NCBI GenBank assembly: GCA_964247055.1
Contig: OZ176054.1
Span: forward strand, 8,556,001-8,620,000
Source of the DNA: Paragordius varius
Lineage: Eukaryota > Animalia > Nematomorpha
Direction: 5' to 3'
Length of the DNA stretch: 64,000 bases
Positions 18,553 to 64,000 of this stretch are shown here, in pieces. Numbering within the stretch: position 1 is the stretch's first letter; each line of letters begins with the position of its first letter. Position numbers and translations under genes: made by a program. The notes beneath the pieces were generated by a model. That model was not told where the DNA came from, ran no database searches, and was given only the letters and a program-made list of their open reading frames with translations.

Positions 18553-21500
18553 ATGAAATTAAACATAACGAACATTCAAACTTTTACAAATGTTTTCCCG
18601 AGTTTTACTTATTCCAACATTCTACCCATTATCATTGTGTTTGGGATTGTCGGAAACGTTCTTATCCTAGTCACTAGTCATTATAACCCAACAAAATCTA
18701 ATGGGTTCATGTATGAAATTTATTTTTGTTTCAATTCATAGGAACATTAATTTTTTATACAAATTTAGTATATTTCTAGTTATTTTTTAAGGATGTAGTA
18801 TAAGTACCTTTATTATTATTTAATTTAGGTTTACTAAATAATATCATTATTTTTTGTTGATTGTAATTGTGTGGATTGGTTTCAATTTTAAGGCATATTC
18901 TCGCTCTTTAATGTGCATCCTTATATTAATTTAATAATAGATATTTTAAGCTCATTATACTTTCAAAATATAAAAACTAATTCCATTTTCGTCAGAAAAA
19001 AGGCGCAAATTACATCAAAACACACGGCATGTCACATAGATTTTAATAAAAAATTTAATTGAAATATAGGCATATAGTGACGAATTTAATTAGTATTCCC
19101 TATAATGTAATGTTAAATGGTGAAAAACTCATTAAAATTACAATGCTAAATATCTGTAATTTTAATTAAAAAAGAATAAACCATAGAATACTAGAGTGAC
19201 GATTTGGCAAAAAAATAGGATTTATTTAGAGAAAAAAGTTTTTTAAACATTTATTAAATTTTTAAATTTTTGGATTAGTATTAATCCCTGCTAACATAGA
19301 TATTTTATAAATCACTTCACTTATTTCATATGTTTTTGCAATGCATTTTAAGTTAATTTTTTCCCATACAATACTACCATAAATGTAATTATCTCTGAAG
19401 TATGATTACATTGTTTTATTAAAATTTTAGAGATTATTTTTAAAAATTTCCTTCAGAGAGGAAAATTATAATAAAATCCGGTTTTTAAAATCAAATGTTA
19501 TTTATTTAATTCATGGAGTTAATCAAAATGTAACGTTTCTTTTAATGAGGTCTCATGAAGAGCCCGCTCCCAAATAGTAACCTGAAACGTTGAGCATTTA
19601 TTTTTGTGGTTTAAAAATATTTTGTAACTATATAACACAAAGTAGGAGGATTGTTTTTATATTTCGAGCAACTTTTTAAATTATCAGAAGATTTACTCGC
19701 ACGATAGAACACATCAAAAAAAAGTTACTATAATAAATGTGAAATCGCACGGTGTAAAATTAACCCACATTCTCATAAATTTTTAAAATATCTAATTTAA
19801 TGACTTTTCTTAAATTTTATATGATTAGGTCACCCCTGCTCAACTATAAATTAAATTCTTATGTGATGATAGACTCATTCTCACACAGTTTTTTTAACAT
19901 ATTATGAGGGCGTAAAAAATAATTTTAAAGATGCTACAAATATAAAATTAGCAGGGGGAGGGGAAGGGGTGGTAGTAGACAAAAAAAGATTGCAAACTAT
20001 TGATTCAAAGCATATTAATTTTTTTTCTTTTCTTAGTTACATATGGTATTTGGCTATATCGGATCTTGGTGCCTGTATCCTCATATCGTTTTGGCCTGTC
20101 ATTCACATATTGGCCACACAATTTAATTGGCCGTTTGCTGTGACGTTTGGGTGGAATGCATTTCTCATCTACTTTGTAAACGTGGCCATCAATGTGTTTA
20201 TGAAAGCGAGTACTCTTATCACCTGTTCGTTAACTCTAGATCGGTATGTCGCACTGCACAAACCGCTGGAATATAGGAAATTTAGTGTACCTCGTATGAT
20301 TAATATGGCTGTCATCGCTTCTTTCCTAATATCATTTCTACTCATGTGCCCACGCATTCTGCAATATAAAATTGTAGGAGATACGCCCAATTTGGCATAC
20401 ACTACCACCACAAGCATAGATATACCACCATCTTTTGTCCTAACTACTAAACAAAATGATAATGATATAATATATAATAACTTCAGTTTAACATCTAACC
20501 TAACCCGAAGGCATATGGTGGGAAATTGGCGTAAAAAACTGGGTAAGAAAATAAAATCTACAAATTCAACGGATAACACTAATAAATTTAATCAACAAAC
20601 AATCCCATATACCATGTATCAAAATGAACCTTTTGCCCTAGACAAAACAATGATAATCAGATCTTTACAAAATTTGTCACCATATTTTGATGCTCCCAAT
20701 TATTTATCTACATCATTTGCATTTAAGAGTCCTTCGATCGGGAAAAGAAAAAGAGACACAGCCTTGTCATACAAAGATACAAATTTTGAAAGAAATCTTT
20801 CAGAGTTTGAGAAATTACTCATCCATAAAAATTTTAGTCGTAACAGACCTAACACTTCAAACACAAAAATTTACCCCCTATTTACTAAACTAAAATTGGT
20901 TCAAACTGGAAATGGAAGTCATTTTATTACAGAAAATGCCCCGTTAGATGAACGAATATCTTATCACTTTGTTCCAAATGAAAATTTTTCCAAACTTGTT
21001 TCCTATAAAATATATCAATGGTTAAGGGAAATAATTTTAACCTTTTTACCCTTGCTCTTGTTAACGCTAATGAATTTTTCCATTATCCGACAATACAAAA
21101 TTAATATGCAGAAAAGGGCTTCTATCATGAATTACAAAAAAACAGATAGTCCAAATAAAAATACTAAAACGAAAAAGATAAAAGCATCCTCGGATAGTGC
21201 AAAACTCCAAAATGGTCATGAAAATTCTACAAATTATGTTATACTTGACGAAAGTAAAAATTCACCATTCAAATTCGCTTTTCAAAAATTTGTCAAAGTA
21301 AATTTTGTGCCTGCAAAATCTTTCCAACACAAAGTTGATAAGGCTTCACCAGTTTCAAAATCATCAATCGAACATGTTAAAAAACAAAGTTTTTTCAAAT
21401 CTCTATCTAAACGCTTGGATAGAAAACGGTCTTCAACTCGAGAATATTCAGATTTTGAGAACGGCGGTATTACTGACGTGGATGAAGAGTCAATACCGCT

Positions 21501-23703
21501 ATCAACGACACCCAAAAAGGAGTTGTTAATTATAACGCAACAAAATCAAGGACGGGATAATATGAAATCTAACATTTTGAGACCCATACTTAAAATAACA
21601 AAATCATCGCCCTCAAAAATTTGCAGTAATATTCTAATGCAGGATTCAAATGAAGAAATTGTTATTACCATCGACAATAAAAATAAAAATCAATCACCCG
21701 CACCTTCCCGACAAATACTAATCACGATGGACTCTGAACCGTTTATGGAGGAGGTTTCATCCGATCAACCCTGTAGCGGACGAATTACATTTTCACACGA
21801 TAATGATACGTATTCAAGCTCTCTAGATAATTCAATGGCTACTGGGTCTTATTTAAACAATAATTGTTTGGAAAATTCTGCAAATGGTTTTTACAATGGC
21901 GATAATTTAACACGCAACAATAACAGCAAAAACAATTTAATTAGTAAAAATAATGATGATGGAAAACATATTTATACTACTTCTGCCTCTGTTTCTCCAA
22001 CCAAAAACAATAAGAAAGAATCAAATGATGATGAAAATCATTGTAATAAAAATCAAATAATTCATCATGACAAATTAGAGTTAACAGTTAACAGGGAAGA
22101 CATGAAAAACACCAAAGATAAAAAGAAGGATAAATTTATGGTTAAAAAAGTAACACATTTTTTCCTATTTCGTTTTCTCTGTCTTTTTTTTATCTAACAA
22201 ATAAATTACAATATAATTGTTAACAAATATTTCTTTATCAGTGGAATGAAAGTGTTAATTTGGCTATATAAATACTTAATAACAACTCCTATATTGGAAA
22301 ATTTTTAGAAGGGGCACAACACACGCATTTAACACGTTATTTTTTGTTGTAAGTTTGTGAGAAAACTATTAGATTAATAACGAAACCTGTAAAATATTTA
22401 ACTACGTTATATATGATTAAATTATAGGGAAAAAAACTTAGCCATATAATTATGATTTATTAAGCTCTTTATACTATCAATGACATTTATAATCGTGTAT
22501 ATAAAGTATATATAGATAGGTGTTATATAACATAATAATTTTTAAACTTGTATATAAAACAACATTTTTCTCTTCCAAACACATCTTTCATCTTGGTATA
22601 TTCTCCCGTTTTTTTCGTTTTTTTATCATTTATTTAGAATTTTTTATTTTAACTTGTAACAACAGATAAGTCGTAAATTATCACTGATACCTACTTCACA
22701 AAATGCAGTCCTTCTGGTCAAAAATGAGAAAGCAAGGAAACATGCCAAAGATGAGAAACGGCTTACAATCATGCTTTTGACTATAGTTAGCTTACACTTT
22801 GTATGCAATATACCACAAGCCTTAGTAACTATCATAGAAAGCAAATATCATCCACCTAATGTTAATCAAACCACCTCCATCACCACTACTTCTGGTATGG
22901 TATGGTATAAAAGCAAAAAATTTATTGAATACATTGATCAATCATCAAAAGAGTGTATCATATATATATTATCAAATAATAATATTTTAGTGATAAAAAA
23001 TCGGATGAAATATACTATCTAAATTGGTGGTTGTATCAATTTAATTAAACAATAAGATTTTTAGCCTAGTATTTTTCATAATATTTATTTTGAGAAAAAA
23101 TGGTGTAATAAAAAACTAATTTTGTAGGAACATTTTAAATCTAATAAGATTAGAATACTAAAAATCACTTAATTTGTAGGTAAAAGCCATATATAATTTT
23201 AATCCATTTTCAACAATTTTATTTAATGTTGTTTCCAAAAAAATAAATCAATGCTAAACATTGTTAACAAATAAGTATTTGGCCAAAATTTGTGATTTTT
23301 TTAAAATGATATATATTTTTTAGCAATCAAGGGTGTTCTTCTCTCAGAAGAACAAAATATATAATACCCTGGATTTAGATATGCATTAATATTCAAAATT
23401 TACAAATTAATAAGTAACTCATATAAATATGTAAATATGATATATTTGTTAGCATAAAAAATAACGATTTCTCCTTTTATAATTATTATTATTGTGATAG
23501 CCAATGGACATAACAATCAAAATATTCATGAATTGGGATTTTACATCATTCAAATAGCTTTAACTGCAACGAATGTGCTAGAAACACTTAATTTTGCCCT
23601 CAATTTTTATCTATATTGCGTATTTATCAAAGATTTCAGATTACAAGTCAAAACATTGTGTCAACGACTCTGGGCAAATTGTGATATTAAATGTTTTAAA
23701 TAA
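18553..23703 (+). CDS. Class A (rhodopsin-like) peptide GPCR, FMRFamide/myosuppressin/MIP(SPR)-receptor-like, about 900 aa, 4 exons
   Basis: Exons 18553-18710, 20037-22149, 22666-22894, 23501-23703 join through GT-AG introns with consistent phases (2,0,1); 2703 nt = 901 codons. TM1 GIVGNVL, TM2 YLAISD, TM3 LTLDRY (DRY at 20239-20247), TM5 LPLLLLTLMN, TM6 FVCNIP, TM7 NVLETLNFALNFYLYC..KDFR. The start codon is inferred (in-frame stop at 18541-18543; short N-terminus with an NIT sequon). Confidence 0.85.
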
Positions 23704-58930: not shown

Positions 58931-59170
58931 GCTACATTTTCTATCAATTATAATTTCATTAGATTATTTTTTGTACCGCCTGATCTTGGACGCAATGTTA
59001 TGTTAGATCGTATTCACTACAAAAACTAGGAATGTTATATCTTAATTCTTATATTTAAGACGTTTAACAAATTTGTGTTTGATCCTATTTATATGTAGTT
59101 TTAGTCTTATCCTACCAACCGTAATACATCTGTATTCGCTCCAATCATCTAACATGTGATCTTAAAACAC

Positions 59171-62100
59171 ATGGAACCAAAATTAAAATATGAGAGGGTA
59201 GATGATTTGGGTAACATTTTAACAAAAGAATATCTTTCATGCTTTAAAATTCATAAAAAAGTTATTTTATAGTAATATGGTAGTACATAGCGTTTGGCAC
59301 TGAATGGGGAAACATATATATCTTAGATCACCTTGGAAATCGTATAGATTCCAAGGAAATGGCTAATGTTTTCTATTTATTTTTATTTTAGCATTCTACC
59401 ATTGTTAACGATATAAGCATAAATCAAAATGGTGAATATATAGCAAGTTGCTCACAGGATGGCAAAGTATTTTTTCTGCCAATATAGGTTAATATAACTG
59501 GGTTATATACCGAAGAATTAAATTTTTCTTACAAAATGGACACTGATGTTAGATGTATTGCAATAAATCCCAATTATTCAAAAACAAGTAGTAGACTATT
59601 TGTCATTGGTACATCCATGGTTAATATAAATTAAAATTTAGGTTATAATGTTTGAAAAAAATATTTTAAACAAAAAATTAAACACCATATATAACAGTGG
59701 CTTTGGTAATATTGAAAACATTATATGGCAAAACGAGATGTTATTGTGGAATGATCAAAAAGTTTATGCTATTAAGATATAATTTATTAGTCTGTAAAAC
59801 TATATGATATTAACACATCATCTATAATTGGTTCAATTGTACGAGACACTTATCCAACAAAAGAGGTCTTCAACTGTTTTATTCGATGGTACGAACCCTG
59901 GGAAACAAAAGTACGTTAATAATATTGATTTAGTAATTGCTATTCAACAGTCGCATTTTTCTACAATTATTGTGTTTGGTTTAAGTTAAACTATTAAATT
60001 TTTATATTGCAAAAGGAATTTTAATTAATTTATTTATATTCACTGTCCAATATTAACAATTTTGTTTGAAATAAAGCGTGATTATCATTTAGATCAAATA
60101 ATCAAATTATATCTTTAAAAGTATTAAAATAAACGCGATATTTGCAATTTGTTTCATGAATAAAAAACAAGTAAATAGAAATCTATTAGAAATGGAACAA
60201 TAGCTTAGACTTTGCCGAATGCCTATTAATTTACATAATATTTAGCTTGTTTTGCCATATTTCTTAATAGATACCATAAATACATCCATATCCTATATTA
60301 ACATATGCATAAAACTTTAAATGTTTACATATTCAAACTTACAAATATTAGGGATTGTTTGTAAAAAATTTACCCTTTTGCACCACATAGTTATCCATGT
60401 AACGCTGTTTAAATGCAAATAAGTTTGCTTGAGAGAATTTCACATTTTCAATAATATGACAATTTTTATTTTAACATTAATTTTGTTAATTTAATTTTGG
60501 ACACTGTATTTGTATCTCATATTTATATAATCCTAATTATAAATTTCTGTCATACAGAGTAAAGATACTAATTTTTCCACACTGATTGTTGGTTGGGGTG
60601 ATCAACTTAAATTTTGTCGCATAGTTAACACTTCCTCTACACCCTACAACAACATGGTTGAAGAAACATCTCAAAAGCATCATAATAAAATCCATCAAAA
60701 CCCAAAACCTATTGTAAATTCTAATATTGTTTCGCAACCGTCAACCATGTTAAGTAATACAAAAACGTTGTTTGACAGTTTAATGGCTAACACAATGTCA
60801 TCTCTAACTGTCAATAATTTATCAGGGGGTATGGGAAGCAATTTAAGTTCAATCAAATACGTTCAAATTTATAAAAACTTTACGCTTCACTTCTATATTT
60901 GTGGTCTTGTCCCTTACCCTGATTTAGCTAACATAGCTTTGCTTGGGTATGCAAAGGTAAATATCATAATATACCATTTAGAGTTCAAATTCACCCTTAA
61001 AAATTATGAGGTTTTGAGCTTAAAAATTATTTATATTTTTAAAATAAATTTTGTTTAAAATTAAAATAATACTGAAAAAATAATAAACTATTCTATAAGA
61101 ATTTATTTCTTATTTATAATAAATTATATTAGCCCGAAAACACATAATTTATTTTTAGGGTGAATTAGAATTGTTCGAGGGTGAATTAGAATTGTTTGAG
61201 GGTGAATTTTAATTGTTTAAGGTTAATTGTAAATGGTATATTGGCACTTTCAATTAATATTATTTAGCCATTTAAGGTGTAGATTTGCACTTAATGTTTC
61301 AAACCCCTTTATAGTCATATATGATTTTTTTGGTGGGTATATCCAATACATATGCATTTCGTCAAAAATAAATTAATTTTTATGTTTTTATTTTAGAAAC
61401 GATGTTTATACGAATACAATAATTACAGTATGAGTAAATATATATTGCTAAAACGTTTTTTATTATTGCCAAATACCATAATGCAGCAAAGAGAATTATT
61501 ATTGGCCAATAATAATAAAAAGTGGAAAAATAATTATAAGCCAATAATACTGCCCTTTGTTGTGTATGCTATTTGGCAATAATTAATAACTTTATAGTTA
61601 TGTATAATAACTCATACTCCATATGAATATGTAAAAAAATATTTTTATAAAACTTATGTATACACTGAGATATTTTTAATATATCATATAAAAATAATAT
61701 TTTTTGGAAGTTGAATGGGGCAAAAATACCTAAAAAACAGTAGGTTTATATTATTTTACTTTGTATTATAATGCGTTTCCAGGATGATAATCGTATCTTG
61801 ATAAACAATTCTATGACCGGGAATACAATCCATAATACACAATCGTCAAAAAATAATAACAATCGTTTGGAATTACGATCAGAAAACCTGGCTGAAGGGC
61901 TTAATTTAGATCATTTGGAATTACCATCAGAAAACCTGGCTGAAGGGCTTAATTTAGATCAAAATTTGGTAGATAATAAGGAAAACACTGTGATATCTAA
62001 TAATCAACTTCAATCTAATATAGAAGAAAATTGCCAACCAACGGAGATGATTTCAGGCATAGTTGATGGGCAAGAGATCTCTGAAATGCCTGAAAATATT

Positions 62101-64000
62101 ATGCCTGCGGAAAAAATACTTAAAAAATCCACAACAACGAATATTAGCGCAAAAGCTAAGTCCCAGCTTAACAAATACACTTATTCTGTTAAGAAGGGTG
62201 CCATGGACACAATTGACTCTAAAAAAATTGTTCAAAGTCCCGAATATATTTTGTCACCAACACAAAAGGTTTTGTAAAACATATTTTAATAAATATATAT
62301 AAACCAAGAGCAATTACCATTTCTAATATTTTAGTATGACTTAATTTGCAATACTATTTGATATTGTGCATACTTTTTAATTTAAATAACTTTATCTTTT
62401 AGAAAGTTCCAAAGATTAAACGACCTCAACTTCATTTAATTTCCCCCATGGCTGATAGTTTATTTTATGAAGAATTGGTGAATGATGCTCTGAGCATAAA
62501 GGATTGGCAAACTATTAATCCCTGGCAATACAGATTAGGTGTCATATTTTTATTAATTACGTTTTAAAATTTTAATGTAAGTGGATATTTGATTTGTCTG
62601 TTTTAAACTAACAGAGTAGATATTAAATTATAACCAAATAATTAACTTTTATCTAAAATACCCAAAACTATAACATTTGCAACTCAAATTCACCCTTAAA
62701 CAATCTGAAACCACCCTCGAGCAATTCTAATTTACCCTCGAACGTTTCATATTCATTCTTGAGCAATTCAAATCATCTTAAAAAATATGTTTTTGTATAT
62801 TAAAATTTTTTATATTTTTTACATTTTTATAAAATATCTAAAATTAATATGATACTAAAATAACCATAAAGAAATTTTCAAATTAATGATAAGTTATTTT
62901 AGCCCGAAAAAACATAATTTATTTTAGGTTGAATTTGAATCGCAAGGGTGAATTTGATTAGTTCAATGGTAATTTAATTGTTCAAGGGTGAATTTGGGTG
63001 ATTTTAATTTAATTTTCAGGGTCATATCTTTATTTAATATACATTTAAGTTGGTTAAGTCTCGCCCGCTGAGTTTTATTTTATGCGTAATGGTTGTATGA
63101 GCACCTATTATTTTACTATTGTTGTGATCTAGTTAAGTAAATCCATAACATTGAACCCAAAATTATCTATAATGAATTTGTGTTTTAAATATGTGCGAGT
63201 ATGTAGCTTTGGCATTTAATTATTGTTATCTGTTACCTTTACTGTTTGAGCACTTTTTGTGGACCCAAATACAAGATTTTCTTGAAATATATTAATTTAT
63301 TCGGTGTGACGGATAGATAAAGGATTTAAATAAAATTATAATGTTCCTTTATGAAAATGCAGAAAGCTGCGCTAAAACAACAATCGGTAATATATATTAC
63401 TTTTGTATCAATATTGGCTTCCATCAGGGCTCACAACGTTAAGTCCGTTACTTTTAAAATTATGGCTTCCAACCGGAACCCAGTTTCTGAGATTTTAGCA
63501 GGAACCGGTTCCTGGGTTAGAATTAACCCGGTCCCGCTTCCTCAGAAACCACCCCGGTTAACCAAAATTTTAGGAAACGCCCCGGTTCCATTTTTAAAAT
63601 CTTAGCAACCAGGCCAGTCTTGGTTTCAATTTTTGACTTTGGTTATGTAACTAAAGACATTTCCACCCAAGGAATATGTTACACACAGATGATTTGATAA
63701 TCACAAAAAAACAGCACACGAAGAAGTCAAAAGCTCATTCCTTCAATGGCACTTCTGTTACCGAAAGTATAGATTATGAACCAATGTACCAAAAACAAAA
63801 GTAATGATTATAGGAGATGAATACATAACTGTAAAATATTCATGCTCTATTTCTCACACCAAGATAACAACAAATGTCATTTTATGCATATCTTGTAAAT
63901 TTAATTCCACAAAAGGTGCTCTAAACATTAAAAGAACACAAGATATTATCTAATAATTTATCAATATCAATTCATAGAATATTTGAAGGAAGAACCATCA
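59171..64000 (+). CDS. VPS41: Vacuolar protein sorting-associated protein 41 (HOPS subunit), N-terminal WD40 part; gene continues beyond the window
   Basis: Exons 59171-59260, 59284-59367, 59392-59466, 59488-59619, 59642-59761, 59791-59910, 60558-60956, 61783-62268, 62403-62538, 63978->64000. Motifs: EPKLKYER, IHKK|YIAFGTEWGNIYILD..GN, VNDISI.QNGEYIASCSQDGK|VNITGLY, IAINP, MFEK, GNI..I.W, SVKLYDI, TLIVGWG..LKFC, FYICGLVP, RPQLHLI.P, DAL.IK....YRL|EY. The last exon assignment is the weakest. Confidence 0.9.
60970..61240. mobile_element. Foldback-like 21-bp-repeat MITE in a VPS41 intron
   Basis: TATACCATTTAG...TAAATGGTATA with GGGTGAATT(A/T)GAATTGTT units; starts 13 nt after the splice donor at 60957. 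Confidence 0.75.
61456..61588. repeat. Small imperfect inverted repeat (about 130 bp) in a VPS41 intron
   Basis: ATTATTGCCAAATA..CAT...GCAAAG mirrored by CTTTGTTG..TATG.TATTTGGCAATAAT. Confidence 0.55.
61867..61962 (+). repeat. 48-bp (16-codon) tandem duplication inside a VPS41 exon
   Basis: LELRSENLAEGLNLDH / LELPSENLAEGLNLDQ; 2 mismatches in 48 nt. Confidence 0.9.
62680..63000. mobile_element. Degenerate foldback-like 21-bp-repeat MITE in a VPS41 intron
   Basis: AAATTCACCCT units at the left, GGGTGAATTTG units at the right, shared core; termini eroded. Confidence 0.6.
63464..63625. repeat. Second copy of the AACCGG-rich element, in a VPS41 intron
   Basis: GGCTTCCAACCGGAACCCAGTTTCTGAGATTTTAG closely matches 56360-56397. 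Confidence 0.6.

Follow-up and report, generated by a model that had tools for sequence, protein, structure and literature searches.

The window analysed here is a stretch of 64,000 nucleotides (G000:C5:8556001-8620000) with a GC content of 25%, which belongs to a horsehair worm (Nematomorpha) assembly of 110.6 Mb in 44 contigs. Towards its end, the window carries on the forward strand the first exons of a gene for VPS41, the subunit of the HOPS tethering complex that has an N-terminal beta-propeller. The identification of the gene as VPS41, put forward in an earlier note on this DNA, is borne out by the Pfam profile PF23411 (Beta-prop_Vps41), which tiles the gene exon by exon, and by exons for TPR_Vps41 and Clathrin repeats downstream. 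The latter lie on the same strand, 4.5-5.0 kb past the window end, and match PF23556 (TPR_Vps41) with 48.1 and 41.4 bits (cut-off 27) and PF00637 (Clathrin repeat) with 33-36 bits (cut-off 29.6). In a six-frame search of the whole 110.6-Mb genome, this was the sole PF23411 locus above the family cut-off of 33, reaching 62 bits with a match that covers profile positions 7-120 and is read through five stops. Exon 3 resembles a WD40 blade, scoring 25.2 bits with WD40 and 24.5 bits with PF23411. The comparison of exon 5 with PDB by phmmer returned chance-level matches only, and word searches with exons 4, 7 and 9 retrieved no VPS41 orthologue for a comparison of intron positions. Clathrin heavy-chain matches with apparent stops inside them were also considered as read-through of tiny introns, a candidate that was rejected as the stops sit at the edges of the alignments.

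The 5' part of the gene consists of six short open pieces separated by five segments of 21-29 nt, all on the forward strand and all in phase 0. The PF23411 profile was run against each exon piece on its own, not joined, and the profile positions matched by successive pieces abut. Exon 1 (59171..59260) begins with an ATG and forms an open frame of 30 codons that matches profile positions 1-27. It is followed by intron 1 (59261..59283, 23 nt, GT..TAG), which carries an in-frame TAG at its nucleotide 10, and the profile continues from 27 to 28 in exon 2 (59284..59367, 28 codons, open frame, profile 28-53). Intron 2 (59368..59391, 24 nt) and intron 3 (59467..59487, 21 nt) each have their terminal TAG as in-frame stop; the profile passes from 53 to 54 across the former, into exon 3 (59392..59466, 25 codons, open frame, profile 54-78), and from 78 to 79 across the latter, into exon 4 (59488..59619, 44 codons, open frame, profile 79-119). 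Intron 4 (59620..59641, 22 nt) shows an in-frame TAA at nucleotide 13 and separates profile position 119 from 124, where the match of exon 5 begins (59642..59761, 40 codons, open frame, profile 124-162). Finally, intron 5 (59762..59790, 29 nt) has an in-frame TAA at nucleotide 19 and precedes exon 6 (59791..59910, 40 codons, open frame), which had no family match of its own in Pfam, PDB phmmer or protein atlas searches and fills profile positions 163-199, exactly between the end of exon 5 at 162 and the start of exon 7 at 200. The earlier note had described these five GT-AG segments of 23, 24, 21, 22 and 29 nt, each in phase 0 and with an in-frame stop, and had stated that VPS41 homology is restored upon their removal; the coordinates proved exact, and the profile junctions at 27|28, 53|54, 78|79 and 119|124 agree with the second statement.

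The sequences of the five segments are, in order, GTTATTTTATAGTAATATGGTAG (23 nt), GTTTTCTATTTATTTTTATTTTAG (24 nt), GTATTTTTTCTGCCAATATAG (21 nt), GTTAATATAAATTAAAATTTAG (22 nt) and GTTTATGCTATTAAGATATAATTTATTAG (29 nt). All five end with TAG and four start with GTT. Three of them (23, 22 and 29 nt) shift the reading frame, and the remaining two (24 and 21 nt) are multiples of three. Their GC content ranges from 9 to 29%, compared to 23-37% for exons 1-6. Four of the five have a thymine at intron position +3, where U1-dependent 5' splice sites do not usually carry one. Several adenines also lie 4-12 nt upstream of the AG in each segment, from which no motif is definable with five introns.

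Introns of a much larger size follow in the same gene, as had been claimed before, and lengths of 647, 1446 and 1439 nt are supported by the homology-based gene model, in which these introns are bounded by exons 7-9. Intron 6 (59911..60557, 647 nt, phase 0) reads GTACGT...CCTAAT...CATACAG, with the CCTAAT located 20 nt before the CAG and a pyrimidine-rich 3' end, and exon 7 (60558..60956, 133 codons, profile 200-253) is in frame directly after this CAG. Intron 7 (60957..62402, 1446 nt, GTAAAT...TTTTAG) contains very high-copy repeats and leads to exon 8 (62403..62538, profile 271-312). Intron 8 (62539..63977, 1439 nt) has GT and AG ends and is assigned to phase 1 as this would join the frame of exon 8 to that of exon 9, whose start (63978..64000) belongs to the open frame L012:1978-2206; exon 9 has no Pfam match of its own and the gene extends past the window. 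Thus, all eight introns of the model start with GT and finish with AG, and two of the three long ones exhibit more conventional signals (GTACGT, CTAAT, a pyrimidine run and CAG in one; GTAAAT and TTTTAG in the other). Beyond the window, a further tiny intron of 25 nt (L005:4509-4533, i.e. G000:C5:8624509-8624533; GTAATG...ATACAG, phase 0) splits the TPR/clathrin-repeat region, and the exon after it is followed by an intron of about 160 nt. Since the 25-nt intron lies in this region, the tiny introns of VPS41 are not limited to its 5' end.

The six pieces together amount to 207 stop-free codons. With a stop codon probability of 0.084, derived from base composition, such a run has a chance probability of about 1e-8, which rises to about 9e-6 when each piece may be read in any frame, and the number of open codons is far above chance expectation. 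An alternative genetic code was rejected, since the lengths of three segments are not divisible by three and no inserts are seen relative to the profile. The same locus could instead be a decaying VPS41 pseudogene in which the segments are small insertions or frame-breaking debris with fortuitous GT and AG ends, an explanation in line with the lack of a family match for exon 6 and for several pieces downstream. However, all five breaks are exact GT..AG segments in phase 0 with abutting profile positions, 207 codons are open in DNA of 25% GC, and the genome contains no other VPS41. We therefore regard decay as improbable, also in view of the strain variants described below. A census of short GT..AG bridges between open frames throughout the window did not show a clear enrichment (rank 10-74 among 256 dinucleotide pairs), and it is without discriminating power because GC-rich dinucleotides track coding DNA.

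The boundaries themselves were considered with a slack of 8 codons on each side, and junctions 1, 2, 3 and 5 each admitted a single open GT..AG solution. Extending exon 5 into intron 5 reduced the PF23411 score to 19.7 bits, compared to 21.8 bits for exon 5 alone. Junction 4 admits a second open solution, an intron of 40 nt (59602-59641), and it is also where the Pfam alignment leaves a gap of four positions (119|124). Accordingly, the introns could be real while at least one boundary differs, for example with a donor at 59602, or while splicing is inefficient or alternative; inefficient splicing is known for the tiny introns of Microsporidia, as cited in PMC13644364. Yet the 40-nt alternative would delete six residues that are aligned to profile positions up to 119, and the other four junctions have no alternative, so that we consider such a deviation unlikely, albeit somewhat less so than the decay of the gene.

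Data from other samples bear on the nature of the segments. Four sequencing runs (X1, X3, X4 and X5) aligned at the locus and all are genomic DNA. Among the runs guessed to be RNA, none contained the words of the locus, and no run on record as RNA matched, an observation that is compatible with a pseudogene. The contig from X1 (59165-59450) is collinear through the introns with zero differences, the one from X3 (59296-59865) spans introns 2-5 with 13 substitutions and no gaps, those from X4 (59165-59581 and 59639-59929) are collinear with the segments, and the one from X5 (59204-59325) includes intron 1. Intron 2 is gap-free in DNA contigs from two samples, and in a strain diverged by about 2% the lengths of introns 2-5 are unchanged. 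Because DNA contigs run collinear through them, the segments are real DNA and not assembly errors. One contig of sample S2 (run X4), from the diverged strain, has 3 extra letters within 59165-59295, a region comprising exon 1, intron 1 and the start of exon 2, and these correspond either to an in-frame codon insertion or to a 26-nt allele of intron 1.

These contigs also speak to the proposal that the segments are cut out of the DNA itself, as are the internal eliminated sequences of ciliates, or are artefacts of assembly, rather than being spliced from RNA. In length, the segments are similar to short eliminated sequences of ciliates, and a rare joined form of the DNA may exist beyond the joints listed. 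Nevertheless, contigs of three samples from two studies are collinear and none of the joints listed falls there; moreover, the ends are GT..AG, not TA..TA, and the genome comes from an animal whose mitochondrion is ordinary. Removal from DNA or an assembly artefact is thus the most improbable of the alternatives considered here.

The variants between strains are informative on the reading frame as well. Among the variants listed, 8 fall in exons, of which 5 are synonymous third-position changes, two replace V by I and one replaces S by N. Exon 3 carries two of the synonymous variants, and exon 6 carries two synonymous ones together with one V>I. The proposed frame thereby makes 5 of the 8 synonymous, compared to only 2 and 1 for the two alternative frames, with a chance probability of 0.0085 for at least 5 of 8, a value that is approximate as it is based on 8 exon variants among those listed. 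This enrichment of synonymous sites in the frame of the model points to purifying selection and argues against a pseudogene, as support rather than as a decisive observation.

Taken together, the five segments are very probably genuine U2-type GT-AG spliceosomal introns of 21-29 nt, located in a single-copy, functional VPS41 gene of an AT-rich horsehair worm genome, a reading that is drawn from DNA sequence and homology. Each tiny intron would be recognized as a unit, i.e. by intron definition, by the ordinary major spliceosome, and the branch-point A would lie only a few bases away from both splice sites. The 5' sites of the tiny introns are minimal and would offer little for U1 to pair with, and the same ordinary machinery would also remove the introns of 647, 1446 and 1439 nt. 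A transcript retaining any of the tiny introns is expected to be truncated, since each contains an in-frame stop, and would be open to nonsense-mediated decay; mis-splicing would thus do little harm.

The earlier note had further proposed a spliceosome adapted to minimal introns, a view that finds no echo in the best genomic copies of the snRNAs, of which the recognition sequences are canonical. The best U1 copy scores 124 bits and has ACTTACCTG as its 5' end; for U2, the best copy scores 178 bits and keeps the GTAGTA branch-point box. U1 matches (n = 17, 8 of them over the cut-off) cluster at G000:C6:565000-634000 and C6:3718000-3734000, and U2 matches (n = 46, 35 over the cut-off) at G000:C3:257000-527000, C2:11950000-11989000 and C5:12727000-12788000. 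The scores of these U1 and U2 copies extend from full consensus down to barely recognizable, and this wide range suggests that many are divergent variants or pseudogenes. Some of the divergent copies might be variants used for the tiny introns.

Animal introns below 30 nt have been found in few lineages. Among 51 animal genomes surveyed, only the myxobolid myxozoans and one dicyemid possessed them (PMC13644364), and those of the dicyemid Dicyema japonicum had been published (PMC6736024, PMC6543705). Median lengths are of 27 nt in Henneguya salminicola and of 22 nt in Thelohanellus kitauei and Myxobolus rasmusseni; the reality of introns of 22-27 nt is documented for two other lineages of animals (PMC13644364). 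The earlier note had listed ciliates, nucleomorphs and dicyemids as holders of such introns; the list omitted the myxobolid myxozoans, published in September 2026. A full-text literature search for Nematomorpha or hairworms together with introns, which did not cover the Current Biology nematomorph genome paper, gave no report, and introns go unmentioned in the Gordionus genome paper.

The introns of VPS41 have several traits in common with those of myxobolid myxozoans: GT-AG introns of less than 30 nt between conserved exons of an animal gene, occurrence in clusters of short introns within multi-intron genes, splice-site motifs that are reduced, and a canonical U2 snRNA in a lineage of parasites whose compact genome is rich in AT. 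The U2 snRNA of myxozoans was indeed reported to be canonical despite their ultra-short introns (PMC13644364). On the contrary, position +3 is a T in four of the five introns here, whereas myxozoans present "GTa", and the tiny introns of VPS41 form a 5' run that is then followed by introns of 0.6-1.4 kb. The mitochondrial genome differs as well, being here of an animal type of about 15.7 kb with coding palindromes, which points to Nematomorpha and not to Cnidaria.

With Dicyema japonicum, the horsehair worm shares introns of about 20-30 nt in otherwise conserved genes, as well as a parasitic life and a reduced body plan. Dicyemids carry their mitochondrial genes on minicircles. The cox1 gene of the present genome is located on a contig of 15.7 kb, unlike in dicyemids, and the nuclear genome of 110.6 Mb has many long repeat-filled introns. 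Ciliates such as Paramecium and Stentor and the nucleomorphs have introns of the same length class. In Paramecium, introns whose length is a multiple of three carry an in-frame stop, so that their retention is caught by surveillance, and the tiny introns of VPS41 that are multiples of three similarly carry one. However, ciliates and nucleomorphs are protists or remnants of endosymbionts, and their introns are tiny throughout, whereas tiny and kb-sized introns share a single gene here and the code is standard.

With tiny introns in a horsehair worm, animal introns below 30 nt would have a third origin, this one in ecdysozoans. It is a doubtful extension of what is seen in this gene that Nematomorpha are an independent third lineage of animals in which introns of 21-29 nt form a genome-wide class, clustered at the 5' ends of genes alongside kb-sized introns filled with repeats. 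The presence of tiny and long introns in one gene would make two modes of recognition comparable within a single transcript. Common gene finders assume a minimum intron length above 21-29 nt. With a minimum set higher than about 20 nt, aligners and gene predictors would split up VPS41 and comparable genes, and broken gene models would in turn depress completeness scores and make gene loss look greater than it is in a little-studied phylum. If Nematomorpha do have such a genome-wide class, an annotation artefact could account for some of the published "rampant loss of universal metazoan genes" and of the BUSCO completeness of about 70% in horsehair worms.

The mitochondrial contig of the assembly (C44, 15,693 nt), which bears cox1, exhibits 77 inverted-repeat pairs of at least 30 nt, many of which come from one hairpin array. 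The arms reach up to 208 nt with 100% complementarity (L010:5104-5519), and 17 of the 20 longest palindromes checked fall inside long open reading frames under code 5 (invertebrate mitochondrial). Numerous long perfect palindromes in mitochondrial coding genes, in a genome of about 15 kb, are a hallmark of Nematomorpha, for which the longest published arm is of 142 nt, other taxa presenting shorter or unconfirmed cases (PMC6649704). With regard to this maximum of 142 nt, the 208-nt arm is longer than any published. The published nuclear genome of a gordiid is similarly AT-rich, with 26.9% GC. On the strength of the mitochondrial contig, a dicyemid or myxozoan origin of the assembly was rejected. 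Just upstream of cox1 lies a tandem array (L010:6752-7451) of a hairpin unit of 49-52 nt with a spacing of 72 nt. A cox1-like fragment is also present in a nuclear contig (G000:C1:10612280-10612597; profile 284-393, six stops) and is probably a copy of mitochondrial DNA.

High-copy repeats occupy 60832-61766 and 62515-63075 in the region of introns 7 and 8, with a summed contig word depth of up to 3.6 million compared to about 700 in the flanks. At 60832-61766, contig word depths exceed those of the flanks by factors of hundreds to thousands. In many contigs, 61046-61217 is joined to 62976 or, on the opposite strand, to 62907, and related tandem units of 20-21 nt are found at 61153-61222 and 62943-62995. 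The repeats of the two introns look like MITE-type elements flanking exon 8. Elsewhere in the window, an open frame of 742 codons (19969-22197, forward strand) is very long for DNA of 25% GC; its hydrophobic N-terminal part looks like a 7-transmembrane receptor and is followed by a long low-complexity tail.
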